From the IMG/VR virus record IMGVR_UViG_3300046694_000136, positions 62,001 through 126,000 of that record: 64,000 bases of DNA; one strand, given 5' to 3'. A program made the position numbers and the translations under genes. A model generated the notes under the pieces. That model worked only from the letters and a program-made list of their open reading frames with translations. It ran no database searches and was not told where the DNA came from. This document shows, piece after piece, positions 2,956 to 33,700 of the stretch. The first letter of the stretch is position 1, and each line of letters opens with the position of its first letter.

Positions 2956-2965
2956 GTTTCTTTCC

Positions 2966-3478
2966 TTACTTGCTTTGAGTCAGTGGAGTGGTAATTGGGA
3001 AAACAGGAAATTCACTGTGTTCCACTTTTTCGAATTGCTTAAAATAATCAATCATCTCTTGCGCTGTACGACAACCGAATTCATTATCGGTCACCGCGGT
3101 AACCAGCACGCCCTTGGCTTGACACGCCAGTACACAGTTGATGGTATCTGCCAGCGACGTGAAGTAGCGCTCGCCCTCGCCACGATGGAGCGTGATACTG
3201 TGCATCCCCTCAATAGGGTAACGGACCTTCATGTTCTCTTTAGGAGTCAGCATGAAGGCTTTGAAACGATGCGGAAATTGACCCGGGTAGGCGGTTTTGT
3301 AAGTCGCCATGGTGAACAGGTACTGATCAAAGTTTACTTCGAGGCCAGGTGGGATAAACACCCGTGGATCACCCGCCAGCGCTTTGGGTACGTTGAACTC
3401 AATATCGAACGAGTCGTAAGGTTGGTAACCCTTAACGATCTCATCGAAAATTTCTGCCATCGGGCTTTGTTGTTCCAT
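2966..3478 (-). CDS. Hypothetical protein
   Basis: 170 aa ORF tightly packed in the reverse operon. Confidence 0.7.
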   Translation of the reverse strand: MEQQSPMAEIFDEIVKGYQPYDSFDIEFNVPKALAGDPRVFIPPGLEVNFDQYLFTMATYKTAYPGQFPHRFKAFMLTPKENMKVRYPIEGMHSITLHRGEGERYFTSLADTINCVLACQAKGVLVTAVTDNEFGCRTAQEMIDYFKQFEKVEHSEFPVFPITTPLTQSK

Positions 3479-3495
3479 GGGTGTTTACTCGAAGA

Positions 3496-4203
3496 TTATC
3501 TGAGTTCTTGTGCAATACGGATACCAGTAACCGTCGCTTTCCCTACCGAGTTAACAAGCCCACGGAGATCGTTGAGAAGAGCGCCGGTGAAAACGTCATC
3601 GAGTTCTTCAACAGGGATCACGTTACCGGTAACAATGTTCCGCAAAGCAGTGAGCTTACCGGCCAGGCATTTCGTGATGAGGGAGCAGCGCTGACGATCA
3701 AACGAGGCAACGACCGAAACGCTAAGCAGTGGGTCGTAACCAAGGGCTTTGAATCCGGCGAAGACTTCTTCACCAATGTTCTTCCCGCACCAGGTCTCGG
3801 TATTAAGACCGCTCACCTTGAGCATTCTCATATCCAACAAGACACTGCTGCCTTCTGGCGCCTTGATGAAGGCGGAGGTTGGCATCGCGGTGGTAGCAAC
3901 GTGAGCGTGGTAAATCTTCCCTTCCACCTCAAAGGAAACCATCAGGGCATTTACCCGCATCGCGCTTACGTCGAGCTCGTCCATTACTCCCCACGGACGC
4001 TGGCCAGGAACTTGGCAAAGCGCGAAGTAGTTAGGAATGTCGACAGGTACCGTCAGAAACTGGCTATGGTGACCTTTACGACCGAAAGGATCGCCTTTCG
4101 AGTACTCGACCGCTAACGGCGCAGCCAGAACCGGGGAAACAAAGAACTTTGCAGTGTCGGTATTTTCTTCGTAAACTGGATACGCGCGGGTAATGAATTC
4201 CAT
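3496..4203 (-). CDS. Stand-alone paralog of the central domain of the phiKZ-type major capsid protein
   Basis: Start moved to ATG 4203 (AGGAAAG RBS directly after the upstream stop). Motifs YPVY..KFFVSP, FALCQ, GVMDELD, TTAMPTSAF and VTGIRI resemble the gp120-family middle region as recalled. Confidence 0.55.
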   Translation of the reverse strand: MEFITRAYPVYEENTDTAKFFVSPVLAAPLAVEYSKGDPFGRKGHHSQFLTVPVDIPNYFALCQVPGQRPWGVMDELDVSAMRVNALMVSFEVEGKIYHAHVATTAMPTSAFIKAPEGSSVLLDMRMLKVSGLNTETWCGKNIGEEVFAGFKALGYDPLLSVSVVASFDRQRCSLITKCLAGKLTALRNIVTGNVIPVEELDDVFTGALLNDLRGLVNSVGKATVTGIRIAQELR

Positions 4204-4211
4204 GATCTTTC

Positions 4212-5681
4212 CTATTCGAATAGTTCTTTCGTGATCACACGAATCACCATGTACAGTGACAGAGCAGTCCGTGTGGTTAGGACCCATTGCGGGGTCTTAC
4301 GCCCAGTGATGTCAATTACGATCTTGTCACCCAACTCTCGGATGATTTTAACCTGGTCGTTGTTACTGCGAGAAGCCCCGTACGCACCACGCATCTTAAT
4401 CAATACGTCGTACACGTTACTCCGCTTAATACCATTGGCATGCAAGTATTCAAACATGTGCAAAACAATGGTTTCAGCAAACGTTTTGTAATCGGGGTAC
4501 TTCGGGTTGTTGTACCGCTTAGCAAACTCCTGGATCGAATACTGGAGCATCTCCATACGGACGTTATCCAACACACCCGCAGCGTACTCCATCAGTTCCT
4601 CTTTGAAGAACGAACTCTCTTCAGTAAGGATCCGGTCCAGATAAAGAACATGGGCGGTTACATCTTTCGCCACGCTCTTGATACTTAATTCGTCCTTCAG
4701 TTGAACTTTAGCGGACTCAACTTTTACGATGTTGGTTTTGTTCTTCACATCGTGGAAGACTTTGTTGATGTCGTTAATAGCCCGACGCAACCGGTTCTGG
4801 ATATCACCCACCATGTAGACAATCTTCTTGTCGTTGTCCATCTTGGACCACGCTTCGTAGTGAATTCCCGTCTTAGGGTTGATGATGTACTCAGCACGAG
4901 CCTCGATGAGGGCCTTCCAGCTACCGTAGCGCTTGATGTCGTACTTCAGGCTCAAGCGGTTATAGGTCTCGTATACGACTTCCTTACGAGCTTGGAACGG
5001 ATAGTCATTATGTACGATGCTGGTCAGGCACTTGTAGTGATACATGGAAACCACGTCCACCATAGCCCGGTGTTTCTCATCCGCTTTCAACGTACTCTTG
5101 TTGATACGGAACAAGAGGTAAGGGACGGTCATGTTGAACGCGTCGCCTACGACCGCCCACTCGCTCTTGATCGCGGCGCAAGCGTGCAGGTTTTCCCGCA
5201 GCTCATCTTCATCGCAGTCAAAGATCTCGTTGAACCACTCGTTACGGTCAGCCGTGGTGAAGGTGATCTTCTCCAGACCAAGGTAAGGTGCGCCGAAGAA
5301 CGCCATGTGGTCGTGCATCCCAACTTTACGAGTGATGAAGTTGTAGACGTACTTCTTAAGGGTAAGGGCCCACTTAGAGTTAACCTCCAAGTACTGACCC
5401 ATCTTTTCGAAGACTTGCAGGATGGCGTTGGTGCTTTCGAAGTTTACCCCTTGCAGGAGCGCTTCCATCCCTGCTACATCACTCAGTTCATACTGAGGAG
5501 GTGAAGGCTTGGCGAACTCGTGAGGGTGTCTGTCTTGAAAGAGACCGAGGTATTGATCAGGTACAAAGATCGAGGGTTGCTTGTTCCAGTACTCGTTCTC
5601 AGCTTCCTCAGCCGCTCGATCCGAACTGAGGTCTTCTGGGTTGTACTGAACCGGTACTCGGCTGAAATCTAATTCTGACAT
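4212..5681 (-). CDS. Conserved virion structural protein (phiKZ gp32-like)
   Basis: Start moved to ATG 5681 (TAAGGAGG RBS); acidic N-terminus with a VAGME site; HMAFFG..LG..I.F...DR..WF signature; position near terminase. Confidence 0.6.
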   Translation of the reverse strand: MSELDFSRVPVQYNPEDLSSDRAAEEAENEYWNKQPSIFVPDQYLGLFQDRHPHEFAKPSPPQYELSDVAGMEALLQGVNFESTNAILQVFEKMGQYLEVNSKWALTLKKYVYNFITRKVGMHDHMAFFGAPYLGLEKITFTTADRNEWFNEIFDCDEDELRENLHACAAIKSEWAVVGDAFNMTVPYLLFRINKSTLKADEKHRAMVDVVSMYHYKCLTSIVHNDYPFQARKEVVYETYNRLSLKYDIKRYGSWKALIEARAEYIINPKTGIHYEAWSKMDNDKKIVYMVGDIQNRLRRAINDINKVFHDVKNKTNIVKVESAKVQLKDELSIKSVAKDVTAHVLYLDRILTEESSFFKEELMEYAAGVLDNVRMEMLQYSIQEFAKRYNNPKYPDYKTFAETIVLHMFEYLHANGIKRSNVYDVLIKMRGAYGASRSNNDQVKIIRELGDKIVIDITGRKTPQWVLTTRTALSLYMVIRVITKELFE

Positions 5682-12381: not shown

Positions 12382-12747
12382 ATGACGCAACGGATCCTAA
12401 AGATAAACTACACCCAAGTAGCAGCTCATTTGGGTGAACGGCTAGCTCGCTCGCAGGATCCAGACACCCCTCCGCACAACCTCACTTTTGGGTGTGTTCA
12501 TGGAATCCTAACCAGCTTGTTCAACGATTACGAGGGAGAACTTAACTACCCCTTTGGGAAGGAACATCTTACTGAGGTCCCATACGGCACCATAGGTACC
12601 GAAGCTCAAGCCCTTACTGAAATCCTTTTTGCGGATCTTGGTTCGGACAGTTTCGACGACGTGGTGATTAGTAACACGCCTGGGGTTGTAACGTGGTATA
12701 AGGAGAATCCCATCATGTTCCCCTTGGTACTCATCAAAGTAAGTTGA
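12382..12747 (+). CDS. Small hypothetical early protein
   Basis: 121 aa, AAGG RBS. Confidence 0.7.
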   Translation: MTQRILKINYTQVAAHLGERLARSQDPDTPPHNLTFGCVHGILTSLFNDYEGELNYPFGKEHLTEVPYGTIGTEAQALTEILFADLGSDSFDDVVISNTPGVVTWYKENPIMFPLVLIKVS

Positions 12748-12758
12748 AGGGGGTAGTA

Positions 12759-13172
12759 ATGATCAAACCATTAATGAACGACATCGTTGATTTCAAGTAC
12801 GTGCAGTCTGGGATCATTGGCGACGAAGAACGGGGCTGCGTGATCATCGGTCCCGAGCTGAACTTCCAGGCTGCGCGCTTGATTGCTCCAGAAATTGTGG
12901 TCAAGCACGCCAACATGTTCCCGTACTTCGGGGATAAGGTTAACCAGAACAACGACCCAGGCGCTTACAACTACTTCCTGATTCGTCGTCCTAATGACTC
13001 GGTTGAAGTCATCGGCTACCCTTGGGTGAACGAAGATACGTTCAAGACTGTCTCTGGTCGAGTGCGGATCTACAACCTCAGCAACTTCAGCGAGAAGATG
13101 GCGGGTCCTATCGCTAAGCTGTTTGCTGACTTGGGAATCTCCTACACTCAGAACGATGTCGACACCCAGTGA
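12759..13172 (+). CDS. Conserved core protein (phiKZ gp49-like, SH3-like fold)
   Basis: H.N..PY..DP..Y.Y..IG.PWV signature; immediately upstream of the polymerase as in phiKZ. Confidence 0.6.
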   Translation: MIKPLMNDIVDFKYVQSGIIGDEERGCVIIGPELNFQAARLIAPEIVVKHANMFPYFGDKVNQNNDPGAYNYFLIRRPNDSVEVIGYPWVNEDTFKTVSGRVRIYNLSNFSEKMAGPIAKLFADLGISYTQNDVDTQ

Positions 13173-13184
13173 AAGTTTTCAAAA

Positions 13185-13226
13185 ACCACACCTCCTATTA
13201 GTTAGGGGGTGTGGGTAACTTTTTTA
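13185..13226 (+). terminator. Intrinsic terminator
   Basis: CCACACCTCCT...AGGGGGTGTGG stem followed by a T-run. Confidence 0.8.
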
Positions 13227-13279
13227 TTTGCCTCTTTATTTTTTCTTTAATCACTTAACACGCACGAGAGCATTGGACC

Positions 13280-15385
13280 ATGGGTGTACCTGCTAAAGTA
13301 GACGGTGGTGTAACCATCGCTGTATCACCCTTCATGGACAAGAATTACGAAACCAACCGAAATTTCCTGAAACCTTACCACTATCAAGCCGCTAACTTCC
13401 TGTCGATCGTTTACAACTACGATTACGACCATTTGCTAGAACTGATGCGGGTAGTGTTCGTACCTGCTGAGAATGGCTTTAAAGAAGCTAAGTTCAAGAT
13501 CTTCAAGAAGAACAAACACGGTGACCGGGTCGTAGAAGTTGTATACACCCGTGAGTTCTTCAATTACGTTAGACAAAAGAATTACCACTTATCTCCGTCG
13601 CTGGTAGCGTATACCCATACCGACGAAGAACAGTCCGTTAACTCGATCGCAACTGAAACCTTCATTGACTTCCGTCGTTTCTACAAAGGTAAGTTACACG
13701 AAGCCAAAGAAGTAGGTGATTCCGAAGCGGCCAAAGCGTTCCACGAGATCCAGAACGCCTTGAAGATCTTCAACAACGCCCAGTCGGGTGCAATGTCGTC
13801 TTCGGGTACTCCGCTATTCAACCACTCTGGTCATACCACTCTGACCAGTATCTGCCGTTCCCTGACTTCGACTGCAAACTTGATTAACGAACGACTGATT
13901 ACCGGTAACCGGTTACTGTTGTCGTACAACAAGACCATTGAAGGCTTCTTGGCTCAGTTGCAGTTCTCTGACCATCACCTCATTGAGGAAGTGATTAAAG
14001 AACACGGTATGAAGTACGCGACTGTTGACCAAGTCATGGACATGGTTCGTCGTTGCGCTAACTACTACTTCAGCAGCAAGTCTAAGCTGGCGAAAATTCA
14101 TCGTTTCGTTGAGTTGTTGACGGGTCTGGAACGTACCATCCTGCTGTGCGTGATGGACATTCGTGGTCTGTACACGACTAACCCGAAAGTCATGACCCAG
14201 TTCTTTGCTGAGTGGTGTGCGGTTCCTGAGATTCCAGAAGGCGCTGAGCCTGACGACTTCCTCAAGCCAACCAACGGGGACTACAAGATCCTCTGCTTGA
14301 CCAAGCTGGGCCGTGACCCAAGCAAGTTGGCAATGAACCACCTGAACCAGTACCACGTGAGTTTGGAAGCCAAGTGGTCCAAGTTCATCATGGCATTCTT
14401 CCGTTCTCGTATCCCACCGACTGGGATTTACGATGTAAAAGAGATCGTTCGTGAAAGCGTAATGACCTCCGACACTGACTCCGTGATCTACAGTGTTGAC
14501 ATGGTAATTGAGAACTTCGCTAAGGACGAAGAAACCGAGATTCGTTTCAATGGCGTATTGACGTACTTCATCCGTTGCATTGCTGTAGACCAACACGCCA
14601 AGCTCAGCGTTAACATGAACGTGGCGAAGAAGTTCCAGCATCGTCTGCACATGAAGAATGAGTTCCTGTATACAGCCTACTTCACAACCAACATGTCTAA
14701 GCACTACTTCATGCTGGAGCTGATGTGTGAAGGGGTAATGTACGAAGCGGCTAAGCTGGAGAAGAAAGGGGTTCACTTGAAGGGCGTGAAGATCGCGGAA
14801 CTGGTCCGTAACTTTACGGGTAAAGTGATGAGACAAGCACTTGATACGCTGTACAACAAAGAGAAGTTGTGCGCAGCGACCCTGCTTAAAGAAGTGGCTG
14901 ACATTGAACGAGCGTTGATCGACAATATCAGTAATGGCGGATGGTTGTGGTTGCGGAAGGATAACATCAAGCATGAATCGGTGTACGCCAATCCGGACTC
15001 GAGTATCTACTACTACCACAAGATGTGGAAAAACCTACTGGAGCCTAAATACGGCGAAGCTCCACAACTGCCGTACAAAGCTTATAAAGTAAACTTGGCT
15101 CTCGATGGCAAGAAGAAGATGGCAACCTTCATTGACAGTATCGAGGATGAGAACTTTAAAGCGATGGCTCAGTCCTTCTTTAAAGATCGTGATGGTCTGA
15201 CGTCTCTGTACGTCCCAACAGACATGATCGAAGGCATTGGGGGGATTCCTAAAGAGTTCTTGCCGTTTGTAGACATTCGGCAGGTTATCCAACAGAACCT
15301 GAAGTCGGTGTACGCAATCTTGGAATCGTTCGGTCTATACATTCTGAACGCCAAGACAACCCGACTGGTATCGGACGAACATTAA
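13280..15385 (+). CDS. Split family-B DNA polymerase, polymerase part (phiKZ gp50-like)
   Basis: Motif B LKIFNNAQSGA, motif C SDTDS, KHY and KGV motifs; 701 aa. Confidence 0.88.
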   Translation: MGVPAKVDGGVTIAVSPFMDKNYETNRNFLKPYHYQAANFLSIVYNYDYDHLLELMRVVFVPAENGFKEAKFKIFKKNKHGDRVVEVVYTREFFNYVRQKNYHLSPSLVAYTHTDEEQSVNSIATETFIDFRRFYKGKLHEAKEVGDSEAAKAFHEIQNALKIFNNAQSGAMSSSGTPLFNHSGHTTLTSICRSLTSTANLINERLITGNRLLLSYNKTIEGFLAQLQFSDHHLIEEVIKEHGMKYATVDQVMDMVRRCANYYFSSKSKLAKIHRFVELLTGLERTILLCVMDIRGLYTTNPKVMTQFFAEWCAVPEIPEGAEPDDFLKPTNGDYKILCLTKLGRDPSKLAMNHLNQYHVSLEAKWSKFIMAFFRSRIPPTGIYDVKEIVRESVMTSDTDSVIYSVDMVIENFAKDEETEIRFNGVLTYFIRCIAVDQHAKLSVNMNVAKKFQHRLHMKNEFLYTAYFTTNMSKHYFMLELMCEGVMYEAAKLEKKGVHLKGVKIAELVRNFTGKVMRQALDTLYNKEKLCAATLLKEVADIERALIDNISNGGWLWLRKDNIKHESVYANPDSSIYYYHKMWKNLLEPKYGEAPQLPYKAYKVNLALDGKKKMATFIDSIEDENFKAMAQSFFKDRDGLTSLYVPTDMIEGIGGIPKEFLPFVDIRQVIQQNLKSVYAILESFGLYILNAKTTRLVSDEH

Positions 15386-17807: not shown

Positions 17808-17900
17808 TAGTACGAATCGAAGATATAAATGTGTGTAGGCATACACTGTGCGATTCTGCTAACAGTCACCCTTTCTTAAGAAAAGATGGAGTTATACCTT

Positions 17901-19886
17901 ATGGCCGTTCAACAAAACCGCAAAGGCGCGGGCAGCAATTCCTGGGATGGTAAAAATGGCAACGCCGCAGAGTTCTCCGCTCTGTCGGAACTCTTCCATA
18001 CCCCTTCCATGTCGTCCGACAACCGCCAGTTGCCGGAAGTTGATGAGGTGATCGAGATCCTCAAGAAGGGCTACACTGCGATGAGTGAATCCACCATCCA
18101 GCCTGCCCAACGCGCAATCATCCCGACTGTCGACAAAGTGTCGCCTGTCATCAGCTCCACCCTGCCGGGTCTGGTAATGCACCGCCTGGTCGGCCAGAGC
18201 GTCTGGGTCATGCTGGTACTGTTCTCCAACAAGGACAACGCCATCGCGACCGAAACCGTTCAAGTGCTTCAGCCTATGGGCATGCCGCACAAGACCTCGG
18301 TCCTGCTGACCCCGACCAACTACTTCACCCACGAGCTGGTCGACAACCTGAAGAAGCACTTCAAGGGCGTCCTGGAAAACGAAGGCCTGAAAGGCGAAGT
18401 CGAGATCATCAACCTGATGACCGAAGACTTGGAAATGCTGCAACACTCCCAGGCCGGTGAGCCGAAAGAGCGTCCACAGCGCATCGCCAACTACCTGAAA
18501 GGCGAGTGGGAAACCGCGGTGTTCTGCAAACTGTCCTCGGAGTATCCGAAGCACAAGCAGACTCTGCCTTCGCCGTTCAAAGATCCTGATGCACCGTACG
18601 GCAAAGACGGCTGGGCCGAAGCACGCGTTACCGCAATCGACGGCAAGGTCTCCCGCGCCGGCACGCTGATGCCGTCCAACATGGAACTGGTGATTTCGAC
18701 CACCAACAACCCGAACAGCAGCAACAACAACCAGAACAACCCGAACTCGAAAGGGATCGTGCGCGCTCTGGCTACTGTTCAGTTGTCGGCCATCAGTTAC
18801 CAAATGCACATGCAGAACATCGCGGCCATCTCGCAGGCCGGCGGTCAAGCCGATGCTATCCAGGCGTTCCTGGGCATCAACGGCGGCATGTACATGAACG
18901 GCTACCGTCCGCTGCACCCGGTCATCACTCTCGACCACGCCAACGCGGAAGAGATGATGAACTACAACAACGGCCTGTTCCCGCACTACTACGCGCTGTT
19001 CGCGCTGATGTGCACCAACACCGACTACATCTTCACTGAACCACTGCGTCGCGCCAACGTCGGCTCCCGGGGCAACCTGAGCTCCTTCGAACCGCGCATC
19101 GAACAGCTGGTTGCTCAGGCGTTCACCGGTGTTCGTCCAGTAATGGACGACAAGACCATCCTGGACACCGAAGCAGTCAACAAGTGGATCCACCAGAACA
19201 TCTCGCCGAACGCTCTGTTCCGCAGCAACGTGATCCTGGGCGGCCTGTCGTCCCCGGTGAACAAGCACCTGGAAGTTCTGTCGGATCCGGTCCTGGCCAA
19301 CCGTCAGTCGGCGGTACAAACCATGATCGCGGTAATGGACGCAATCTCCAAAGGTCGTTTCTCGCAGATCGTTGCGGAAAACGTCAAGTCTGGCAAAGGC
19401 TGGAAGCCAGGCGATGTTGCGCTGCACCGCACGAAGATGATCGCGGTGAACGGTCTCGCGAAGAACCCACAAGGTCGCGAGCTGAACACCCTGGAAGTCG
19501 ACGAAATGTACCTCGGTACTCACAAAGGTAAGGCTGGGCTGCAACAGTCCATGAACTACCTGAGCGTGCTGTACGGCACCAACAACGAAGAAGTTCGTTC
19601 GCGTTGCCAGAAGCTGCGTATCGAAATGACCACCGGTCTGTTCGATGGTCACGTGCACATCAACAACTTCGGTTACTCCTGCGTCTGGGATCCGCATCTG
19701 ATGGCTGTTATCGGTGCCGCTCTGTCGGAAATCGGTACGCTGAACGTTGCGAACACCTACAGCTCGATGCGTCCGAACAACATGGCGTTCATGCCAATGG
19801 CTGGTCTGCAAACCGTTACGTCGGTCGGCAACAGCAACAACATGAACCTCCTGGGTGGTTTCGGTAACGGCGGGATCTGGGGCTAA
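17901..19886 (+). CDS. chmA: Chimallin, major nuclear shell protein (phiKZ gp54/PhuN)
   Basis: About 660 aa, very strong codon bias, early promoter, immediately upstream of nvRNAP beta'-N, low-complexity termini; start set by GGAG RBS. Confidence 0.85.
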   Translation: MAVQQNRKGAGSNSWDGKNGNAAEFSALSELFHTPSMSSDNRQLPEVDEVIEILKKGYTAMSESTIQPAQRAIIPTVDKVSPVISSTLPGLVMHRLVGQSVWVMLVLFSNKDNAIATETVQVLQPMGMPHKTSVLLTPTNYFTHELVDNLKKHFKGVLENEGLKGEVEIINLMTEDLEMLQHSQAGEPKERPQRIANYLKGEWETAVFCKLSSEYPKHKQTLPSPFKDPDAPYGKDGWAEARVTAIDGKVSRAGTLMPSNMELVISTTNNPNSSNNNQNNPNSKGIVRALATVQLSAISYQMHMQNIAAISQAGGQADAIQAFLGINGGMYMNGYRPLHPVITLDHANAEEMMNYNNGLFPHYYALFALMCTNTDYIFTEPLRRANVGSRGNLSSFEPRIEQLVAQAFTGVRPVMDDKTILDTEAVNKWIHQNISPNALFRSNVILGGLSSPVNKHLEVLSDPVLANRQSAVQTMIAVMDAISKGRFSQIVAENVKSGKGWKPGDVALHRTKMIAVNGLAKNPQGRELNTLEVDEMYLGTHKGKAGLQQSMNYLSVLYGTNNEEVRSRCQKLRIEMTTGLFDGHVHINNFGYSCVWDPHLMAVIGAALSEIGTLNVANTYSSMRPNNMAFMPMAGLQTVTSVGNSNNMNLLGGFGNGGIWG

Positions 19887-26320: not shown

Positions 26321-26354
26321 AGAGAGGGAGGGAAACCTCCCTCTCCCCTCTTTT
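26321..26354 (+). terminator. Intrinsic terminator
   Basis: GAGAGGGAGG-GAAA-CCTCCCTCTC followed by a pyrimidine/T tract. Confidence 0.78.
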
Positions 26355-26387: not shown

Positions 26388-26417
26388 CAGTGTGTTAGGT
26401 AGCCTCTGGAGTTGCTG

Positions 26418-27977
26418 ATGTTAACGATTGAAGTTATTCGAAAATCCATGAAGGGAATGAAGGCTATGGTTGTAGCCCTCAATGAACACTCCCTCAGGTT
26501 TAACGGCGACAACTCTATTAAACTGGAGAAGTCCAACAAGGGTAATATTAAGTCACAGGAAGGTAAACTGTTTGATGCGTTTAACGATTATGTTGAACGT
26601 TACTTTGATTCTGAAGAACGGCTAGCGTTATACAAGCTGTACGAGAAAGCTCACCGGATCTGCGAGAACCCGACTTACCGTGGGTACAAAGTAGAACTGC
26701 CTGAGATCAAACCGATCATCAACCAGATCTTGGATTTCATCCAGCCAGCTCGGTTCATGGACTTCGTCGGTAACTCTCGGCATCTGGTGATTCCTCCAGA
26801 GTTGAATGTGGCAGCCAGCAAAGGGTACTACCCTGCTGAAACCACGATCACCGAAGAACATTACGTTCACTTGGTGAAGATGACTCTGCTGGTTCGCAAC
26901 ATCTATCCGATTATCTTCTCGCTGACGTATCGTTATGCTGGGTTCATGAACATGAGCTTTGCAGAATTCGTTTGCGGTGACTTGATCAAGGACAACCCTC
27001 ACATCATCAATACCGAGGGCTGGCGTAAGCTGTTGCTGTATGTGGATTATTCATTCAAGAAGCGTGGGGAACCGTTAAAGGTCGACGGTGTGGGAAGCAT
27101 GGAGTATTTCGTGGAGCATGTGCTCTACAATACTGTCTTCACACGTTTGTGCTGTGCCATTATTCCGGAAACGGAAGAAGGCAAGAACTTGGCAACTGCG
27201 ATCAACGCTGCTGTACGGCAGCATGAGTCCAGTGGCGCTAAGTGGCGTCGTAAGGACGACGGTTATGAAGGGGAAGAAGAGAAGCGTTCGCTGTATGAGC
27301 GTTATCAAGCGAAAGAGGACGTTAAGTCTACCGACGAAGAAGTTGAAGCTGAATTCTTCTCGATGGGTTTGATGGACGAGTGCGACAATGAACGTCACAC
27401 GGATCGCTTTGCCATCCCATGCATGTCACTGGGCATCAAGCAGCCAGATCTTGTAGAGAAGATCTTCGACAACATCCCACCCAACTGGGAGTTCGAGCTT
27501 GCACCTCACAACCTTAAATTACTGCAAATGGTATTTAAGGGTGACATTTCTATCATGATTTACTGGGCGGCTAACTATACCCAACTGATGGCAGCCATTG
27601 CGCTGGCTCAGGTTCGGTTAGCTGAATGGGGTTACGAGTACCTCCCGACTATTGTTGGGGCTATTCATGATCCAAACGGCATGCGGTCTATTGCCGATAT
27701 TCTGAAGTTGACCTCGACGGATAAAGATTATCTGGAGAGTATCTGTGACGTCCAAAGTAGAAACGATGAGGGTCGATCCTTCAACGAAGCTATTGAAGAC
27801 GCTACCGACTTCTTGGAAGGTCTTGCAGCGGGTCAGTGGAAATCCAACTTGGAGTATGGTGTTCTTAACGAACTCGAGATTTACGATCGAGTCGAACGCG
27901 GTGCCTTGTTTGAGATCGAGATTGAACCCAAGATACGTGAAGAGTTTATGCGTTTGGTTAGGCAAATCAGCGAATAA
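26418..27977 (+). CDS. nvRNAP promoter-specificity (sigma-like) subunit, phiKZ gp68-like
   Basis: About 520 aa helical protein, early promoter, position between gp67-like and gp69-like genes. Confidence 0.65.
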   Translation: MLTIEVIRKSMKGMKAMVVALNEHSLRFNGDNSIKLEKSNKGNIKSQEGKLFDAFNDYVERYFDSEERLALYKLYEKAHRICENPTYRGYKVELPEIKPIINQILDFIQPARFMDFVGNSRHLVIPPELNVAASKGYYPAETTITEEHYVHLVKMTLLVRNIYPIIFSLTYRYAGFMNMSFAEFVCGDLIKDNPHIINTEGWRKLLLYVDYSFKKRGEPLKVDGVGSMEYFVEHVLYNTVFTRLCCAIIPETEEGKNLATAINAAVRQHESSGAKWRRKDDGYEGEEEKRSLYERYQAKEDVKSTDEEVEAEFFSMGLMDECDNERHTDRFAIPCMSLGIKQPDLVEKIFDNIPPNWEFELAPHNLKLLQMVFKGDISIMIYWAANYTQLMAAIALAQVRLAEWGYEYLPTIVGAIHDPNGMRSIADILKLTSTDKDYLESICDVQSRNDEGRSFNEAIEDATDFLEGLAAGQWKSNLEYGVLNELEIYDRVERGALFEIEIEPKIREEFMRLVRQISE

Positions 27978-28004: not shown

Positions 28005-29450
28005 ATGGCTGAAATTACTACTGTACTGCAACGCGCTTATTTTGGTATCGGCACGACTCAACACGACCACGTGCACCGGCATAGCACGTTGCATCTGGAG
28101 AACGTCGAGATCGACCGACTCCGTCACGAACAAGAGAAGGGCGGGATTCTTCCCAAGACTCTCCACGACGTCGCAATGAACTCCGGTCAGCTCTGCTCGC
28201 AGCCTCAAGGCTATGTCTCGGTTGAAGAAGGTATGAACATGCGTCGTGGCATCTGCCTCCTCCAGTTCGAGATCTATTCGAACGCGGCAGAAGCGTCCAA
28301 CATGTCCGTCGTCTGCTACTTGGTCGGCGGTAACAGCTCAGCCGAGAATGGCCTGGATCCTACTACTCGGATTCAACCGGTTCGTTGCTGGAGCACGCTG
28401 ACCTCGCAGACCAACGATGCCCAAGGCTATCCAACTGTTCGCCAAGTCGTCGACACTACACACCAGTTCCTGCTGGGGGATCCGTACGGCGCTAAAGAAA
28501 TGGCGGCAGTGCGTCCGTATGACGTGGCCAGTGCTGCATTGGGCTTTGCTGTCAGTGATGGTGACGGCTCCGCTCAGAACTATTGCGGTGTAGCCAACTC
28601 CGACCTGACCAATCAGTTGCTGATGTCGAAGACTCAGAACCTGAACCCAACTCACTACGCGAAAGAGCTGTTGAAGTTGGCGGTACAGACTGGCGATGAA
28701 GTCAGTCAGAACGGTCAAGACATGGCGTGGGCTATTGGTGACTACATGACCACCAGCAGCCTGAACGAGATCTCTCCGCACGATAACCCATTCATGCAGA
28801 CCATGATGAGTGTGCTGAGCGTTCACAGTCTGGCAAGCTTCCGTGGTTGGTCGATCGATGAAATGGTTGAAGTATGGCCAAACTTCCTCGACGTACTGAA
28901 CCTGGACAACATGGACGTAACCAAGTTCGCTGCCGATGATACTACGTTGGTCACCAGCGACTACGGTCGTGTGAACCAGCACGAGATCATCGCATCCGAA
29001 GCGGCCATGATGTGTGTACACCAACTGCTGGCGTGCGGTCTGATGTCGTATCAGTTCAGCGCGACCAACAACCCGACGGCTTTCGACGGGATCGGTGGTG
29101 ACGAAGGTGGCGGTGTATCGTTCTCTCCAGGCAAGGCAATGTCGGTTCTGGATAACGACACCAACATGGAAGGTCGTACCGAAACGTTCAACCGTCAGTT
29201 CACTGATGCGTTCTTCGCCAAGTACACTGGTCCGTACGCTCACCTGCGAACGCTCATCAACCTGAACATGGAGTGTCATATGTTCGGTGAGACCCGCGTG
29301 ACCATCTCGTTCGGTAACGAGTACCACAACGGTAAAACGTTCAGCAACGCAACCTATTACATTAACCATTCCAGTTCTTCCATCTCTGGTACCGAGAACG
29401 GTCTTTCAGAGTCCCGGAACTACTTGAGCAACATCAAGGAATACTTCTAA
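28005..29450 (+). CDS. picA: Nuclear protein import factor PicA/Imp1 (phiKZ gp69-like)
   Basis: 481 aa directly after the gp68-like gene; RPYDV motif; assignment mainly by synteny. Confidence 0.6.
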   Translation: MAEITTVLQRAYFGIGTTQHDHVHRHSTLHLENVEIDRLRHEQEKGGILPKTLHDVAMNSGQLCSQPQGYVSVEEGMNMRRGICLLQFEIYSNAAEASNMSVVCYLVGGNSSAENGLDPTTRIQPVRCWSTLTSQTNDAQGYPTVRQVVDTTHQFLLGDPYGAKEMAAVRPYDVASAALGFAVSDGDGSAQNYCGVANSDLTNQLLMSKTQNLNPTHYAKELLKLAVQTGDEVSQNGQDMAWAIGDYMTTSSLNEISPHDNPFMQTMMSVLSVHSLASFRGWSIDEMVEVWPNFLDVLNLDNMDVTKFAADDTTLVTSDYGRVNQHEIIASEAAMMCVHQLLACGLMSYQFSATNNPTAFDGIGGDEGGGVSFSPGKAMSVLDNDTNMEGRTETFNRQFTDAFFAKYTGPYAHLRTLINLNMECHMFGETRVTISFGNEYHNGKTFSNATYYINHSSSSISGTENGLSESRNYLSNIKEYF

Positions 29451-29461
29451 GGTGACCCGCC

Positions 29462-30976
29462 ATGAATGAACTCAATAAGCTGTACAAGGACATGCTGTTG
29501 TCCTGGAACACCCAAGTCAAAACTGATGGGCGTATCCTGCTGGACTTGGACGGCGATGAGTATCCCATCACCATCGACGGGATGAACCTCTACCTGCCGA
29601 CTACTGACGTCCTCGACGAAGTAGCAGTGGGCAAGGTCTTCTTCCACCCAGCGTGTGAAGATATCACCTCGAAGGAAACCGAAGTCTTCAAGGTGTTGCG
29701 TAAGGTTACTTCCTTGCGTCTCCTGAGCGCCTTCCGTTCGGTCCCTCCGGTGTTGCTACCGCTTGCAGGTCCTAAGCCTAAGAGTTCGTGGAACCAACGC
29801 GTGCTGGACCTCCTGGAGCCTCTCAAGAGCGCTAAAGGCGCCGTGGTTAAAGAACTGACGGATCTGTTCGGTCGTCTGCATGTGGAAGTTGAAGAGAACG
29901 GTCTGGATAACCGCTTCGTCCACTTCAAGACCACCAAGTCCAGCGGTAAGTTGTCGAAGGCTACCGGCGAGAAGGTTTACTACACCACCAAGCCGGAGTT
30001 CCCGTTCTACAACGAACTGGTTCGCCGTCTGGCTCGTACCGAAGGCAAGACCGACAACCAGCAGATCGAAATCAACAACCACAGCGTGTCTCGTGCTGCG
30101 GTGAAGTTGGCTATCCATCTGTTCCAGCACATCGTTCCAGCAGTGCTGTCGCCAGACGATCACGTCCACGAAGCGAATACTCCGATTGCAGCACGTATGG
30201 TTTCGTACCTGGGCTGTTACGCAGATATCGCCGAGCAGATCAACAAGGTCCAAGGTACCTTCCGGGCAGAGTTTGCCAAGGCCGGTATCTACCCGATCAA
30301 CTTGAGCTGGACCGAAGATCTGGAAAACCTGCCTGAGTGGTATAAGCAGGTTCCGAAGATGGACTACAACACCCACAACACCCACGAAGAAACCGTCCAT
30401 CAAGCAGCAGGACGTCAAGACTTCGCCGGGCTGATGTCGGTAAGTAGCAACATCAACCAAACGCCGGTCCAACAAACCCCGGGTAGCCAAGTGCAACAAG
30501 CGGGTGCAGGTATTGACCCAATGACTGGCTTCGTGATCACTCCACCACCTCAAGTGCTGGCGTCTGACCGCCTGACCCGTTACGAGTGCAACTTCGGTAC
30601 TGGTCGGGTGACTCACTACGGTGTTGACACTCTGACCAACCTGCCGGTCATGTACATCTGTACTCGTCAGGGTTCGTTCTTGGAGCGTCAAACTCCAAAC
30701 CCTAATGCCGGCATGATGAACATGTTGGGTGGTTTCAACATGGGCATGGGTGGCATGGGTGGTATGAACGGCATGGGTGGTATGGGTAACATGAACCTGA
30801 TGGCCCAGCCACAACTGCTTCCGAATGGCATGATCCAATTGCCAAACGGTCAGATCATTCACCCGGCTCAGCTTCAACAGCAACAGCAACCTGTGATGCC
30901 AACCGGTTCTCCAAGCGTAACCAACTTGGATAACAACAGCGGTAGCGGCTTCAGCAATAGCCCGGCCTGGGGTTAA
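29462..30976 (+). CDS. phiKZ gp70-like core protein with long Q/G/M/N low-complexity tail
   Basis: LYLPT..FFHP.CE...KE signature; synteny; GGM repeats and poly-Q in the tail. Confidence 0.62.
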   Translation: MNELNKLYKDMLLSWNTQVKTDGRILLDLDGDEYPITIDGMNLYLPTTDVLDEVAVGKVFFHPACEDITSKETEVFKVLRKVTSLRLLSAFRSVPPVLLPLAGPKPKSSWNQRVLDLLEPLKSAKGAVVKELTDLFGRLHVEVEENGLDNRFVHFKTTKSSGKLSKATGEKVYYTTKPEFPFYNELVRRLARTEGKTDNQQIEINNHSVSRAAVKLAIHLFQHIVPAVLSPDDHVHEANTPIAARMVSYLGCYADIAEQINKVQGTFRAEFAKAGIYPINLSWTEDLENLPEWYKQVPKMDYNTHNTHEETVHQAAGRQDFAGLMSVSSNINQTPVQQTPGSQVQQAGAGIDPMTGFVITPPPQVLASDRLTRYECNFGTGRVTHYGVDTLTNLPVMYICTRQGSFLERQTPNPNAGMMNMLGGFNMGMGGMGGMNGMGGMGNMNLMAQPQLLPNGMIQLPNGQIIHPAQLQQQQQPVMPTGSPSVTNLDNNSGSGFSNSPAWG

Positions 30977-30984
30977 CAGGTAGC

Positions 30985-31027
30985 AATAATAACCAGCAGG
31001 GTCACCCCCTGCTGGTTATTATTTTTT
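30985..31027. terminator. Bidirectional terminator
   Basis: AATAATAACCAGCAGGG..CCCTGCTGGTTATTATT. Confidence 0.85.
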
Positions 31028-31044: not shown

Positions 31045-31374
31045 TTATGCTCTGGCTGTATTATTACGTGCAATGCGTGTGTTTAATGCGCTTTCATTGA
31101 TCCGATAGATCACCGTCAGCTTGGTGATGTCCTGATGAGGATCAGTGATTCCGTTGATGTACGCAGTCGTCCACCAGAGGTAAGAAGGAATACCCATTAC
31201 CCGTAGAAAACGATAGAAGTCATTTTTGTAAGCCTGTTGGATAGCGGGAACTACCTGCTGGAAGACAGTCGCCTCCTTACGGATGAGTTCTAATTCAGAC
31301 CTAACTAACGTTTTGTACCGCTCCGTATAGAAGACATCTTTACCATTGCTGAAATCGTTATTGGGAAGTGGCAT
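31045..31374 (-). CDS. Small conserved protein, possibly LysM/T4 gp53-like
   Basis: 109 aa, GAAGG RBS; the LWW...YINGI.DP pattern resembles LysM-type wedge proteins (weak). Confidence 0.55.
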   Translation of the reverse strand: MPLPNNDFSNGKDVFYTERYKTLVRSELELIRKEATVFQQVVPAIQQAYKNDFYRFLRVMGIPSYLWWTTAYINGITDPHQDITKLTVIYRINESALNTRIARNNTARA

Positions 31375-31459: not shown

Positions 31460-33700
31460 ATGAATGAGTTCGAATTTAACTTAACAGGTATAACGGATGC
31501 AGTCCGTTATAAATACGGGTGTGGTGAAAACCAACTTCATCCAGCGCTGATTGGTGTTAGCAGTAACTTAATTGTTTTCCCTATGTGTTCCTCTGCCGGT
31601 CGTATGTACATGGCCGGTAACATGATTCCCAAATCTGTTCCTACTGAAGGTGCAGGTGTTCGTTGGCTCATGAGTGGTAACGAACGTAAATACGGTAAGA
31701 CTTCTCGTAAAGTAGAAGCGCCGAGCAACATGATCGTGGAAGAAGTGTTCAGTATCCAAAGTTTGGACCTGAGCAAGAACACAGACGCATGGCAGCCGAC
31801 TCATATCGTTTATAAGAACGACGAGAAGAACGCCTACGACCTGATGGATCTTCCGGCTTACCACACTCAGAACACCAGTGTGGGTTGGGAGTACGTTTAC
31901 GACAAAGATGTACTGCGTAAACTGAAACCCGGTGCATGGTTACCGAAGGGTACGGTCTTTGCACAAAGTCCTCGTATTGACGAAGACGGCATCTGGCGAT
32001 TCTCGATGCCGACTAAAGTGGCCGCCTATTCGGACCACCGGACTGAAGAGGACGGTATCGTCATCACCGAGTCGTTTGCTGAACGTTGCGCGTGTATGTT
32101 CAAACATATCCGCGGGTTCAACTGGAACGAGGATGAATACATTCCGTTGATGCTGTACGGGACTGAAGAGAATCCTTCTCCATTCCCTCAACCGGGTGAA
32201 CCTATCCGTGAAGACGGTCTCGTGATGGGCTTCCGTAAACGTATTAAAGAGAATGCCTTGGTGAGTCTGACCAAGAAAGCTCTGCGTGAACCGGACCCAA
32301 CTTACGACCACCTGCTTTATGCTCCGCGTGACTGTGAAGTTACAGCGGTCCATGTTGAATCGGATCGTAGCAAGAACAAAGCCAACAACCGCAACACGAC
32401 GTACATCCCGCAACGCCATAACCAAATGCTGGATCGTTATGAGCGTAAGCGTAATGAGATGTGGGTGGCCGTGCTGAACTGGTACGAAGGCAAAGTTCGT
32501 ATGAGTCGTAATGGCAAGATCGCTATGACTCACCGCCTGAACACTTTTATCCGTGATGCTTACGGTAACTACACTGACCGTACTGGCCGTCCTAATCCAC
32601 TGTTCCGTTCCATTAAGCGGGAGAAGTACAAGGATTGGAACGTTACCATTGAACTTAAGCAACGCATGACTGGTCGTGTGAAGTGGAAGTTGTCTGGTTT
32701 GAACGGTGACAAAGGTGTTGTGATCAGCATCATCCCCGATGACCATGCGCCGATGTATGCGGACGGTACTCGGGCAGAAGTGATCCTCAACAACATTCCG
32801 GCTTTCCGCCGGCAGATCTACGCGTTGTTGTTGGAGTTGAGTATCAACTTCTTGACCATGCACATCCATCGTGAAGTGCAGCACCTCCGTAAAGAAGGTG
32901 ATTACCGTGGTGCCCACCGGATCCTGATGGAGTACTTCGAGCAGGGCTTCCCTGAGTTCGCTGAGATGTTCAAACTGGCGACCGAAGAAGAGTCCGATCT
33001 GATCGAGTACATTGATAACGTGAGCAAGAAGAACATCTCTATTCACATTATCAGTAACTCCAAGCTGTTCGGGGTTAACTTGATCAACAAGCTGCGGGAG
33101 CGTTATAAGTACCAGCCGCAGAAAGCAACCTGGGTCAACTCGTTGGGTGAGAAGCAAGAGACTGCGAACCCGATCATGATCAGTATCCAAGACTTGATCC
33201 TTCTGGACAAGTTCGGTAGTGACATGAGTGCTCAGTGCATGCCCAAGTCTAACTTGTTCGGCATGCCAGCGAAGATGAGTGACAGTGACCGTTACAGCTT
33301 GCCAATGAACGATAAGGGTAACAAGAACACTGCTGAGACTGAAGGTCGTTGGGTAACCAGCCAGTCAGGTGGTCAAGAGGTTGTGAAGTTGTTTTCTTTG
33401 GCATACTCACCCGAGAACCGCATCAGCGCAGTTCGTCGTTGGGTGCGCGCTAACGATACTCACAACATTCCTCAGATCATTAAGCCTGAAGAGTACGTGA
33501 ATAACCGTGCGTTGAACATGTCCGTCAGCATGATGAAAGACTCTGGGTTGGCTCTGCGTAATGAGTTGCCTAGTGACATCGTCAGCAACGAACACTTGCA
33601 AGGTTACAACGAAACCCGTTTGGGTGGATTCTTGGCTGAACTTAACGAGAAAGAAGCGGCACTCAAAAGCCAACAACAGGGTGGGCAAGTATCCTCATGA
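31460..33700 (+). CDS. Non-virion RNA polymerase beta C-terminal subunit (phiKZ gp71-73-like)
   Basis: SSAGR.YM, EEDGIVITESFA, KLSGLNGDKGVV, ETEGR. Confidence 0.9.
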   Translation: MNEFEFNLTGITDAVRYKYGCGENQLHPALIGVSSNLIVFPMCSSAGRMYMAGNMIPKSVPTEGAGVRWLMSGNERKYGKTSRKVEAPSNMIVEEVFSIQSLDLSKNTDAWQPTHIVYKNDEKNAYDLMDLPAYHTQNTSVGWEYVYDKDVLRKLKPGAWLPKGTVFAQSPRIDEDGIWRFSMPTKVAAYSDHRTEEDGIVITESFAERCACMFKHIRGFNWNEDEYIPLMLYGTEENPSPFPQPGEPIREDGLVMGFRKRIKENALVSLTKKALREPDPTYDHLLYAPRDCEVTAVHVESDRSKNKANNRNTTYIPQRHNQMLDRYERKRNEMWVAVLNWYEGKVRMSRNGKIAMTHRLNTFIRDAYGNYTDRTGRPNPLFRSIKREKYKDWNVTIELKQRMTGRVKWKLSGLNGDKGVVISIIPDDHAPMYADGTRAEVILNNIPAFRRQIYALLLELSINFLTMHIHREVQHLRKEGDYRGAHRILMEYFEQGFPEFAEMFKLATEEESDLIEYIDNVSKKNISIHIISNSKLFGVNLINKLRERYKYQPQKATWVNSLGEKQETANPIMISIQDLILLDKFGSDMSAQCMPKSNLFGMPAKMSDSDRYSLPMNDKGNKNTAETEGRWVTSQSGGQEVVKLFSLAYSPENRISAVRRWVRANDTHNIPQIIKPEEYVNNRALNMSVSMMKDSGLALRNELPSDIVSNEHLQGYNETRLGGFLAELNEKEAALKSQQQGGQVSS

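Follow-up and report, generated by a model that had tools for sequence, protein, structure and literature searches.

The C-terminal tail of a gp70-like protein resembles the docking arm of chimallin in a nucleus-forming jumbo phage

[quoted passage not shown] A stretch of 64,000 nucleotides from a nucleus-forming jumbo phage (IMG/VR record IMGVR_UViG_3300046694_000136, positions 62,001 to 126,000; hereafter the window, in whose numbering all coordinates are given) raises this question, since the gene next to picA encodes a protein whose last residues look like those of the shell protein chimallin (ChmA). This protein belongs to the family of phiKZ gp70 and PhiPA3 gp64, and the papers we searched, up to late 2026, give gp70 no function and do not mention a C-terminal motif. 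A sequence-only reading of the window had proposed that the likeness is mimicry that plugs the protein into the shell, tethering or opening the import site, or alternatively a shared nuclear-targeting signal. Here, we asked whether the likeness exceeds chance, whether it is maintained across relatives, and what could explain it.

Results

The genes and their products

The gene for ChmA, the major nuclear shell protein, lies at 17886 to 19886 on the plus strand (666 aa) and matches phrog_4795, “nuclear shell protein” (E 1.8e-101). Searches of solved structures by phmmer with single sequences found nothing for ChmA or the gp70-like protein, whereas a profile of ChmA homologs hit the PDB chimallins 8fne, 7sqq, and 7sqt. 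ChmA ends in NSNNMNLLGGFGNGGIWG. Its C-terminal arm (residues 625 to 666; nucleotides 19758 to 19883, plus strand) aligns with the C-terminal segments CTS1 and CTS2 of 201phi2-1 chimallin, with the last 12 residues, LLGGFGNGGIWG (19848 to 19883), corresponding to CTS2. In 201phi2-1, CTS2 is the last 10 residues of chimallin, and its deletion abolishes self-assembly (PMC9365700). In an AF2 model of the full-length protein, the core reached a pTM of 0.83, but residues 625 to 666 stayed below a pLDDT of 50 and were not docked in cis.

The gp70-like gene is the last of a three-gene unit on the plus strand. The first gene, at 26412 to 27977, encodes a homolog of phiKZ gp68, a non-virion RNA polymerase factor (phrog_3209, E 9.4e-116), and is preceded by a terminator-like hairpin at 26322 to 26345. 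The second, at 28005 to 29450, encodes a PicA/Imp1 homolog of 481 aa (phrog_3141), linked by jackhmmer to phiKZ gp69 and PhiPA3 gp63; this is the short form without a C-terminal extension, ending in NIKEYF. The third, at 29462 to 30976, encodes the 504-aa gp70-like protein, and a strong intrinsic-terminator-like hairpin at 30985 to 31023 (plus strand; a 17-bp stem followed by a T run) ends the unit. Family membership of the gp70-like protein rests on phrog_3520 (E 1.9e-93, residues 1 to 464), on tblastn, which found it in 149 phage records (phage EL, 53.6% identity over 98% of the query), and on an HMM that also hit phiKZ gp70 and PhiPA3 gp64. Gene order agrees, as gp68-like, picA, gp70, and nvRNAP beta follow each other about 10 to 13 kb downstream of chmA here and in the same order in EL, Joad, FishSpeaker, PDCC-1, VP4B, Kc263, phiKZ, and PhiPA3.

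An AF2 model of the gp70-like protein predicts a folded body (29462 to 30706, plus strand) in which residues 1 to 305 form an alpha/beta domain (pLDDT above 90), residues 309 to 350 are a disordered loop, and residues 365 to 415 form a small four-stranded beta domain. The predicted fold appears to be new: Foldseek against the PDB gave no hit with E below 0.001, VIA-align gave a best Z of 5.9, inside the noise range, and BFVD returned only uncharacterized jumbo-phage orthologs. Given that it hits phrog_3520 and not phrog_4795, and that its model has no relative among solved structures, chimallins included, the protein is a mimic of the arm only and not a chimallin paralog.

The body is followed by a tail of about 85 residues, with pLDDT below 50 for residues 423 to 449 and 472 to 504. 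At its head (30713 to 30745, plus strand; residues 418 to 428), MMNMLGGFNMG opens a low-complexity stretch rich in Met, Gly, and Asn (residues about 418 to 449). Next comes a tandem LPNG motif, LLPNGMIQLPNGQIIHP (30815 to 30865, plus strand; residues 452 to 468), which is conserved across the EL-like clade and is the only part of the tail with intermediate pLDDT (about 61 to 64). A CTS1-like stretch, PVMPTGSPSVTNLD (30890 to 30931, plus strand; residues 477 to 490), aligns with FMPMAGLQTVTSVG of ChmA, and a related S-V-[YV]-x-D motif is seen in relatives. The CTS2-like end, SGFSNSPAWG (residues 495 to 504), occupies 30944 to 30976 (plus strand) together with the stop codon at 30974 to 30976, so that the protein ends in NNSGSGFSNSPAWG. 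We also considered whether the Met/Gly-rich stretch might be a cohesive domain like those of FG nucleoporins, but the tail has only two GF dipeptides, and the stretch is GM/MG-rich over about 30 residues and not conserved in sequence among close relatives, so the requirement for multiple regularly spaced repeats in a long disordered domain is not fulfilled.

The likeness of the two tails is not due to chance

The resemblance described in the sequence-only reading is real. In the phage's own genome (234.5 kb, 226 genes called with a codon-usage score, since calling by ORF length picked antisense shadow ORFs), we scored the C-terminus-anchored BLOSUM62 match of every other protein to the ChmA tail. 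The gp70-like protein ranked 1 of 225 at every length from 4 to 16 residues, with a score of 32 against 10 for the next protein at 9 residues (z 6.2), and only ChmA and the gp70-like protein end in WG. A gapped local alignment of the last 45 residues of the two proteins scored z 4.45 (p 0.004) against composition-preserving shuffles, and z 4.75 in a relative, locus L010. In this lineage, the likeness runs over about 30 to 40 residues and covers both the CTS1-like and the CTS2-like stretch; outside the window lineage, however, the extended alignment is not significant, so that the CTS1-like likeness is not a family-wide feature.

At the DNA level, the two 3′ ends differ at synonymous sites (27 of 51 nucleotides identical), indicating that the likeness is kept by selection on the protein and not by recent gene conversion. 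Within the lineage, the last 28 or so residues are conserved (GGFGNSPAWG in the nearest relative, locus L008, and SGFGNSPSWG in L010), while the Met/Gly stretch upstream is not. This bears on the internal copy, which the sequence-only reading had compared with NMNLLGGFGNG of ChmA. Although this copy is the second-best of 72,128 11-mers in the proteome against that reference (score 37; self 61; best outside gp70 26) and exceeds shuffles of gp70's own tail (p = 0.002), it lies in a fast-changing stretch and is kept only in L008, not in L010, L012, EL, or further out, suggesting that it is probably incidental low-complexity sequence.

The tail ends of gp70, ChmA, and PicA co-vary

Next, we asked whether the termini are correlated in relatives, a condition that had been set beforehand as a test of the mimicry idea. 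For this purpose, 84 loci were grouped into 31 clusters at 50% ChmA-core identity. Matched ChmA and gp70 tails are more alike than mismatched ones (z 4 to 5.6, p < 0.001) and beat within-tail shuffles (z about 5), whereas two control proteins of the same locus, gp68-like and gp66-like, give z about 0. One locus, L095, whose gp70 is cut by the locus end, was still included in the first permutation, the shuffle, and the control tests but was left out of later statistics. A stricter sister-clade swap test gave 12 against 3 (p 0.018) and 22 against 6 (p 0.002). This phylogeny-controlled signal is modest and depends on the length compared, being not significant at 4 residues, and part of the permutation signal is compositional, for example Arg-rich tails shared within deep clades. 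Nevertheless, independent clades repeat the pattern with other motifs, such as GNGFGHGAGF in ChmA and SFGAGHSRSGF in gp70 of clade L113, or Arg/Asp-rich tails in both proteins of clade L077.

The exact G-F-x-N-x-x-x-W-G register is specific to this lineage, and elsewhere only a short C-terminal hydrophobic or aromatic anchor is shared. Of the 84 gp70 tails, 82 carry a hydrophobic residue at position -1 or -2, against about 50% of phage proteins, and in the supergroup containing the window 33 of 34 carry an aromatic residue there, against 16%. In phiKZ-like phages, gp70 ends in LL/LI while ChmA ends in FY/WY.

Unexpectedly, the strongest partner of the gp70 tail across the family is the tail of PicA and not that of ChmA (z about 7 for gp70 and PicA, against 3 to 5 for either with ChmA). 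This could not be seen from the window alone, in which PicA has no tail, but in 27 of 31 clades PicA carries a C-terminal extension whose last 2 to 4 residues match those of the cognate gp70. Examples are PhiPA3, where gp63 ends in DLGLL and gp64 in GLGLL and where the PicA tail is the proteome-wide best match to the gp64 tail, and phiKZ, where gp69 ends in FQVL and gp70 in GRLL. The idea that gp70 resembles ChmA more where PicA lacks a tail was not borne out, as the mean scores are the same (6.0 against 5.5). Finally, a lineage-specific orphan protein of this phage, encoded outside the window, ends in GGFGGPGGPGTPIW. No homolog was found in PHROGs or the phage collection; the single distant homolog, 29% identical and located in the closest relative, ends in TRGVWG.

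Discussion

Taken together, the genes had been named correctly and the tail likeness and the correlated termini hold, but the interpretation offered from sequence alone is only partly supported. The sequence likeness, its significance within the proteome, its conservation, and the family-wide co-variation of the three tail ends come from our analysis, whereas localization to the shell is taken from the literature for one homolog, PhiPA3 gp64 (PMC10643120), as is the role of CTS2. That the tail of the present protein binds ChmA, that the ChmA groove is what reads the tails, that the tail is needed for incorporation into the shell, and that its purpose is tethering are inferences. A complex prediction of ChmA residues 45 to 652 with gp70 residues 477 to 504, made without controls, scored 0.02, which is evidence neither for nor against binding, and AF2 did not dock even ChmA's own CTS. 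The proposal that the protein opens the import site is pure speculation; phiKZ gp70 did not pull down with Imp1 (bioRxiv 10.1101/2024.03.27.586873).

Our preferred explanation, in which we have moderate confidence, is that the gp70 family combines a body of new predicted fold with a disordered linker and a C-terminal anchor peptide that docks in a co-evolving site, most likely the CTS grooves of ChmA. In this lineage, the last 30 or so residues imitate ChmA's arm, with a CTS1-like MPxG..SVT stretch, a shorter linker, and a CTS2-like GFxNxxxWG at the free carboxyl end. The anchor would insert into the grooves on ChmA protomers that normally receive a neighbor's CTS segments and would tether the gp70 body to the shell on a long leash, probably where grooves are left unfilled next to non-ChmA inserts such as the PicA import site. 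In phiKZ-like phages, where the gp70 and PicA tails end in aliphatic residues, the two may use a site other than the CTS2 pocket. Moreover, PHIKZ070 is absent from the top hits of an antisense knock-down screen that lists 065 to 069 (PMC12571901), and the protein may therefore be dispensable in the laboratory.

Alternatively, and as a possible though less likely reading, the tails could be a shared address label read by something other than the ChmA groove, such as an assembly chaperone, a shell-associated receptor, another member of the import complex, or the prohead protease that cuts phiKZ ChmA before CTS1. The likeness to CTS2 would then reflect a common reader and not lattice insertion. 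This would fit the better match of gp70 and PicA tails to each other than to ChmA, their LL/LI ends in phiKZ-like phages, and the presence of the clade's motif in further unrelated proteins, namely the orphan (in genomes G000, at positions 149049 to 150014 of that genome, and G001) and a 164-aa protein in genome G010. However, no candidate reader was identified, ChmA is the only protein known to bind C-terminal segments of this kind, ChmA-gp70 co-variation exists on its own, and the same order of CTS1-like and CTS2-like parts in the window lineage is hard to explain unless the ChmA grooves are the target.

It is unlikely that the tails have no specific function and are merely fast-evolving, disordered sequence whose composition follows the genome, with a convergent or accidental likeness. 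Their Gly/Asn/Ser/Met-rich or Arg/Asp-rich low complexity, the poor conservation of the internal copy, the compositional part of the permutation signal, and the gapped alignments, not significant in most clades, would agree with this view. Against it stand the large margin in the proteome, the position-specific signal, the flat controls, the positive sister swaps, the near-invariantly hydrophobic or aromatic end of otherwise hypervariable tails, and the terminal W(G) kept in an orphan that otherwise diverged to 29% identity. A recent copy of one 3′ end onto the other gene is very improbable, for although the genes lie 9.6 kb apart on the same strand and TGGGTGGTTTC is identical between the internal copy and chmA, shared amino acids of the terminal 51 nucleotides use different codons (GGT/GGC, AAC/AAT, GGC/GGT), and gp70 already ends in WG in the relative L012, where ChmA ends in FG, so that the W of ChmA appears later than that of gp70, which points to convergence on a common reader.

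It is tempting to speculate, if only tentatively, that chimalliviruses use a fast-evolving, clade-specific C-terminal “lattice-docking code,” in which non-chimallin shell components (gp70, PicA in most clades, and lineage-specific orphans such as the protein of this phage ending in GTPIW) carry tails that imitate the CTS arm and fill the grooves left empty around non-ChmA inserts. If this was the case, such tails would stitch the import site, and perhaps other portals, into the otherwise closed lattice, and matching tails would also act as a compatibility barrier between co-infecting nucleus-forming phages. In any case, the co-varying tail ends give a testable idea, in tractable phages, of how import factors are fastened to the phage nucleus, offer an explanation for the published finding that C-terminally tagged PicA cannot complement, and provide a sequence rule for finding further shell-associated proteins in any chimallivirus genome.

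Comparison with known systems

By analogy only, the tails recall short-linear-motif mimicry and C-terminal peptide docking, as in PDZ-type recognition of C-terminal hydrophobic residues or tail-swap lattices, where a few residues with a free carboxylate and a terminal hydrophobic or aromatic side chain carry the specificity and the motif evolves quickly together with its reader; no PDZ-like or other reader domain was identified here. With CTS1 and CTS2 of 201phi2-1 gp105 (residues 590 to 611 and 622 to 631; PDB 7SQQ/7SQR), the gp70-like tail shares an extreme C-terminal peptide on a flexible linker and, in this phage, the motif GF.N...WG preceded by MP.G..V[TS] in the same order, but it sits on a protein without a chimallin fold, the linker between the two elements is about 4 residues shorter, and its docking is inferred. 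PicA/Imp1 (phiKZ gp69), the selective protein importer at the phage nucleus, is encoded next door in the same transcription unit, and its C terminus is reported to be important for function (PMC11087766), yet the folds of the two proteins are unrelated. The closest relatives are phiKZ gp70, PhiPA3 gp64, and 201phi2-1 gp126, of a chimallivirus core family whose member PhiPA3 gp64 is found at the nuclear shell; they are homologous over the folded body, take the same position directly after picA and before the nvRNAP beta genes, and share the architecture of a body plus a long Met/Gln/Gly/Pro-rich disordered tail ending in a hydrophobic residue. What differs is the tail end, which here is aromatic-Gly (PAWG) and copies ChmA's CTS2, whereas in phiKZ-like phages it ends in GRLL, GLGLL, or GMGLI and copies the end of PicA instead.

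Genomic context of the gp70-like gene

The window derives from a nucleus-forming jumbo phage (a chimallivirus) of 234.5 kb, whose nearest named relative is Pseudomonas phage EL, with a gp70-like protein that is 53.6% identical. The chimallin gene chmA (17886-19886; 666 aa; phrog_4795, "nuclear shell protein") encodes a protein that ends in NSNNMNLLGGFGNGGIWG. About 9.6 kb downstream lies a tight three-gene unit composed of a phiKZ gp68-like gene (26412-27977), picA/imp1 (28005-29450; phrog_3141), and the gp70-like gene (29462-30976; phrog_3520), which is bracketed by terminator-like hairpins at 26322-26345 and 30985-31023. The gp70-like protein contains MMNMLGGFNMG, encoded at nucleotides 30713-30745, and ends in SGFSNSPAWG. 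Thus, the observation made in the sequence-only reading, that the gene next to picA carries copies of chimallin's C-terminal motif, holds, and everything described there is present in the sequence at the positions indicated. Between gp70 and the nvRNAP beta genes, a small gene of 109 aa (31045-31374) lies on the opposite strand. It occupies the same place in the same orientation in Joad (gp42), FishSpeaker, PDCC-1, VP4B, and Kc263, where it is annotated as "baseplate wedge protein," although on present evidence no function can be attached to it.

The ChmA and gp70 tails resemble each other more than expected by chance

To ask whether this likeness exceeds chance, we called 226 genes in the whole phage genome using a codon-usage score. 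Very long antisense "shadow" ORFs lie opposite real genes (for example, on the minus strand at 17892-19811, 29756-30889, and 31940-33190, and at many other places, including one of 639 aa opposite chmA). A gene call based on length picked some of them, and the codon-usage score removed them; they are an effect of codon bias and not genes. We then compared every C terminus with that of ChmA, anchored at the end and without gaps, using BLOSUM62. gp70 ranks first at every length from 4 to 16 residues, scoring 32 at 9 residues against 10 for the runner-up (z 6.2), and ChmA and gp70 are the only two proteins that end in WG. A gapped local alignment of the last 45 residues of both proteins, spanning FMPMAGLQTVTSVGNSNNMNLLGGFGNGGIWG in ChmA and VMPTGSPSVTNLDNNSGSGFSNSPAWG in gp70, scores z 4.45 (P = 0.004) against composition-preserving shuffles, while the relative L010 (locus numbers with the prefix L denote the syntenic regions collected here) gives z 4.75. 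According to an alignment to 201phi2-1 chimallin (PDB accession no. 7SQQ) and the published definitions of the C-terminal segments (CTS1, residues 590-611; CTS2, the last ten residues, 622-631; PMC9365700), the likeness covers a CTS1-like and a CTS2-like element in the same order. At the DNA level, however, only 27 of 51 nucleotides of the two ends are identical, and shared amino acids use different codons, indicating protein-level conservation and not a recent copy. The internal motif is the second-best 11-mer of 72,128 in the proteome (P = 0.002 against shuffles of the tail), but since it lies in a Met/Gly/Asn-rich stretch that is rearranged even in the 84%-identical relative L010, we regard it as probably incidental.

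Predicted structure of the gp70-like protein

AlphaFold2, run with a 54-sequence alignment, predicts a confident body (residues 1-305; pLDDT above 90), a disordered loop (residues 309-350), a small beta domain (residues 365-415), and a disordered tail (residues 420-504). Within the tail, only a tandem LPNG motif (LLPNGMIQLPNGQIIHP; residues 452-468, window 30815-30865) reaches intermediate confidence, as the only tail stretch with a pLDDT above 60. This motif is conserved across the EL-like clade (EL, L012, L022, and Joad) amid otherwise variable low-complexity sequence, and it may be a second binding element. Searches with the body found no relative among solved structures, and in BFVD it matches only uncharacterized jumbo-phage orthologs.

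Tail ends of ChmA and gp70 covary across clades

Next, we asked whether the two termini are correlated in relatives, the test that had been proposed for the mimicry reading. We collected the syntenic region from named phages, together with 123 IMG/VR loci retrieved using two conserved genes between chmA and gp70 as anchors. This yielded 84 distinct ChmA/gp70/PicA triples in 31 clusters at 50% ChmA-core identity. The record of Pseudomonas phage vB_PQ1 (L002; PQ516283.1) was left out of the statistics, since its chmA, picA, and gp70 are broken into many small ORFs with numerous "CRISPR" repeat features, and it looks like a frameshift-rich assembly. We also saw no support for the annotation "DNA ligase" carried by the gp70 homolog of Photobacterium phage PDCC-1 (L005, 15001-16416).

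The gp70 tails are hypervariable in length and composition, being Met/Gln/Gly/Pro-rich in most clades and Arg/Asp-rich in some. Even so, 82 of 84 have a hydrophobic residue at position -1 or -2, against about 50% of phage proteins, and in the supergroup that contains the window 33 of 34 have an aromatic residue there, against 16%. ChmA tails behave alike. One group of metagenomic chimalliviruses (L077, L102, L108, L111, L113, L122, L124, and L132) features strongly Arg/Asp- or Arg/Gly-rich tails on both ChmA and gp70, a composition very different from the Met/Gln/Gly-rich tails seen elsewhere.

When cognate ChmA and gp70 tails were compared with tails re-paired between clusters, the cognate pairs were more alike (z 4-5.6, P < 0.001), and they also exceeded shuffles within the gp70 tail (z about 5), whereas the same test with the gp68-like and gp66-like C termini as controls gave z about 0. 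In a stricter sister-clade swap, which compares each clade only with its nearest neighbor, 12 pairs were for and 3 against with 8 residues and 50% clusters (P = 0.018), and 22 were for and 6 against with 8 residues and 85% clusters (P = 0.002), while the swap with 4 residues was not significant. The signal is therefore real but moderate once relatedness is controlled, and part of it is compositional. Other clades show their own versions of the pattern, such as GNGFGHGAGF in ChmA with SFGAGHSRSGF in gp70 (L113), Arg/Asp-rich tails in both proteins (L077), or GLGRRNY with GRGRSY (L111). Within the window's own clade, gp70 already ends in WG in L012, where ChmA still ends in FG, so that ChmA seems to have moved toward the gp70 motif and not the reverse.

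PicA tails covary with gp70 tails more strongly

PicA was included as a further same-locus protein, run beside the controls, but it turned out to covary with gp70 more strongly than ChmA does, with a permutation z of about 7 in exact C-terminal register over the last 2-4 residues and sister swaps of 12 against 2 (P = 0.0065). These residues match in most clades, including PhiPA3 (L053/L057), phiKZ (L052/L054), 201phi2-1 (L059), L076, L079, L098, L107, L111, L114, L121, and others. For instance, PicA and gp70 end in ADLGLL and GGGLGLL in PhiPA3 (gp63 and gp64), ANLGLL and NGMGLI in 201phi2-1, PDDII and GGGDII in L076, GDTSL and GGTSL in L098, KRRSY and GRGRSY in L111, and TQFGF and GPNFGF in L114. 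In L121 all three proteins agree, with GRYNW in ChmA, PGYNW in PicA, and TGHRW in gp70. Likewise, in the 372-gene proteome of PhiPA3, PicA is the best match to the gp64 tail. In four clusters (EL-like, including this window; OBP-like; the Vibrio phages; and FishSpeaker), however, PicA is a short form without any extension, which is why the sequence-only reading could see only the likeness to ChmA.

Further proteins with similar endings

Outside the window, at 149049-150014 (plus strand) of the genome record G000 (L051:3050-4015), lies a 321-aa orphan with no PHROG match and no phage homolog, which ends in APGAGGFGGPGGPGTPIW; its terminus, GGFGGPGGPGTPIW, is CTS2-like. Its only homolog is 29% identical, lies in the closest complete relative (L134, minus strand, 1423-2406), and ends in HTRGVWG. 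There it is the best proteome-wide match to the ChmA tail, ahead of gp70. A terminal hydrophobic-W(G) has been kept while the rest of the protein diverged. This orphan is a candidate further shell-docked protein. Other proteins have tails resembling the motif of their phage, although these are weak leads that could be chance. In genome record G010, a 164-aa protein (223286-223780) ends in EPASRGF, beside GTSRGF in PicA and PTGRGY in gp70. In the phiKZ-like record G007, a 725-aa protein (12703-14880) ends in RNSWY, beside PGTWY in ChmA, while its PhiPA3 ortholog (G006, 2709-4937) ends in NSFSW, beside GSGFY in ChmA.

Possible roles of the tails

The simplest account is that these tails are anchor peptides read by one coevolving site. 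ChmA is the only component known to bind such C-terminal segments, namely CTS1 and CTS2 of its neighbors, and in this lineage gp70 imitates both segments in order. We therefore favor docking of the gp70 tail into the CTS grooves of ChmA, which would tether the body to the shell, plausibly where grooves stay unfilled beside non-ChmA inserts such as the import site. This fits the shell localization of PhiPA3 gp64 and its recovery with ChmB and PicA in pull-downs (PMC10643120). While the tail likeness, its conservation at the protein level, and the covariation of the tail ends are results of our sequence comparisons, the binding of the tail to ChmA, the identity of the groove as its reader, the presence of this gp70-like protein at the shell, and the tethering role are inferred: a single complex prediction returned no answer, with AlphaFold2 not docking even ChmA's own arm. 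The interpretation offered in the sequence-only reading, mimicry that plugs this protein into the shell, is partly supported.

Alternatively, the tails might be recognized by a different common reader. This main rival is favored by the fact that in phiKZ-like phages gp70 and PicA end in LL/LI while ChmA ends in FY/WY. Pure chance or composition, as well as gene conversion, are disfavored by the proteome-wide, covariation, and DNA-level comparisons. In the published data, phiKZ gp70 did not copurify with Imp1 and is not among the top antisense knock-down hits, so the protein may be an accessory tether and not a core part of the importer.

Relation to known systems

In the papers we could search, up to late 2026, we found no mention of a non-chimallin protein carrying a copy of the CTS arm, of family-wide covariation of the gp70, PicA, and ChmA tail ends, or of further orphan proteins with the same ending, and these three features therefore appear to be new. 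They have practical value, since they make shell attachment of the import machinery directly testable. In contrast, the gene family to which the gp70-like protein belongs and the principle of CTS docking are both known.
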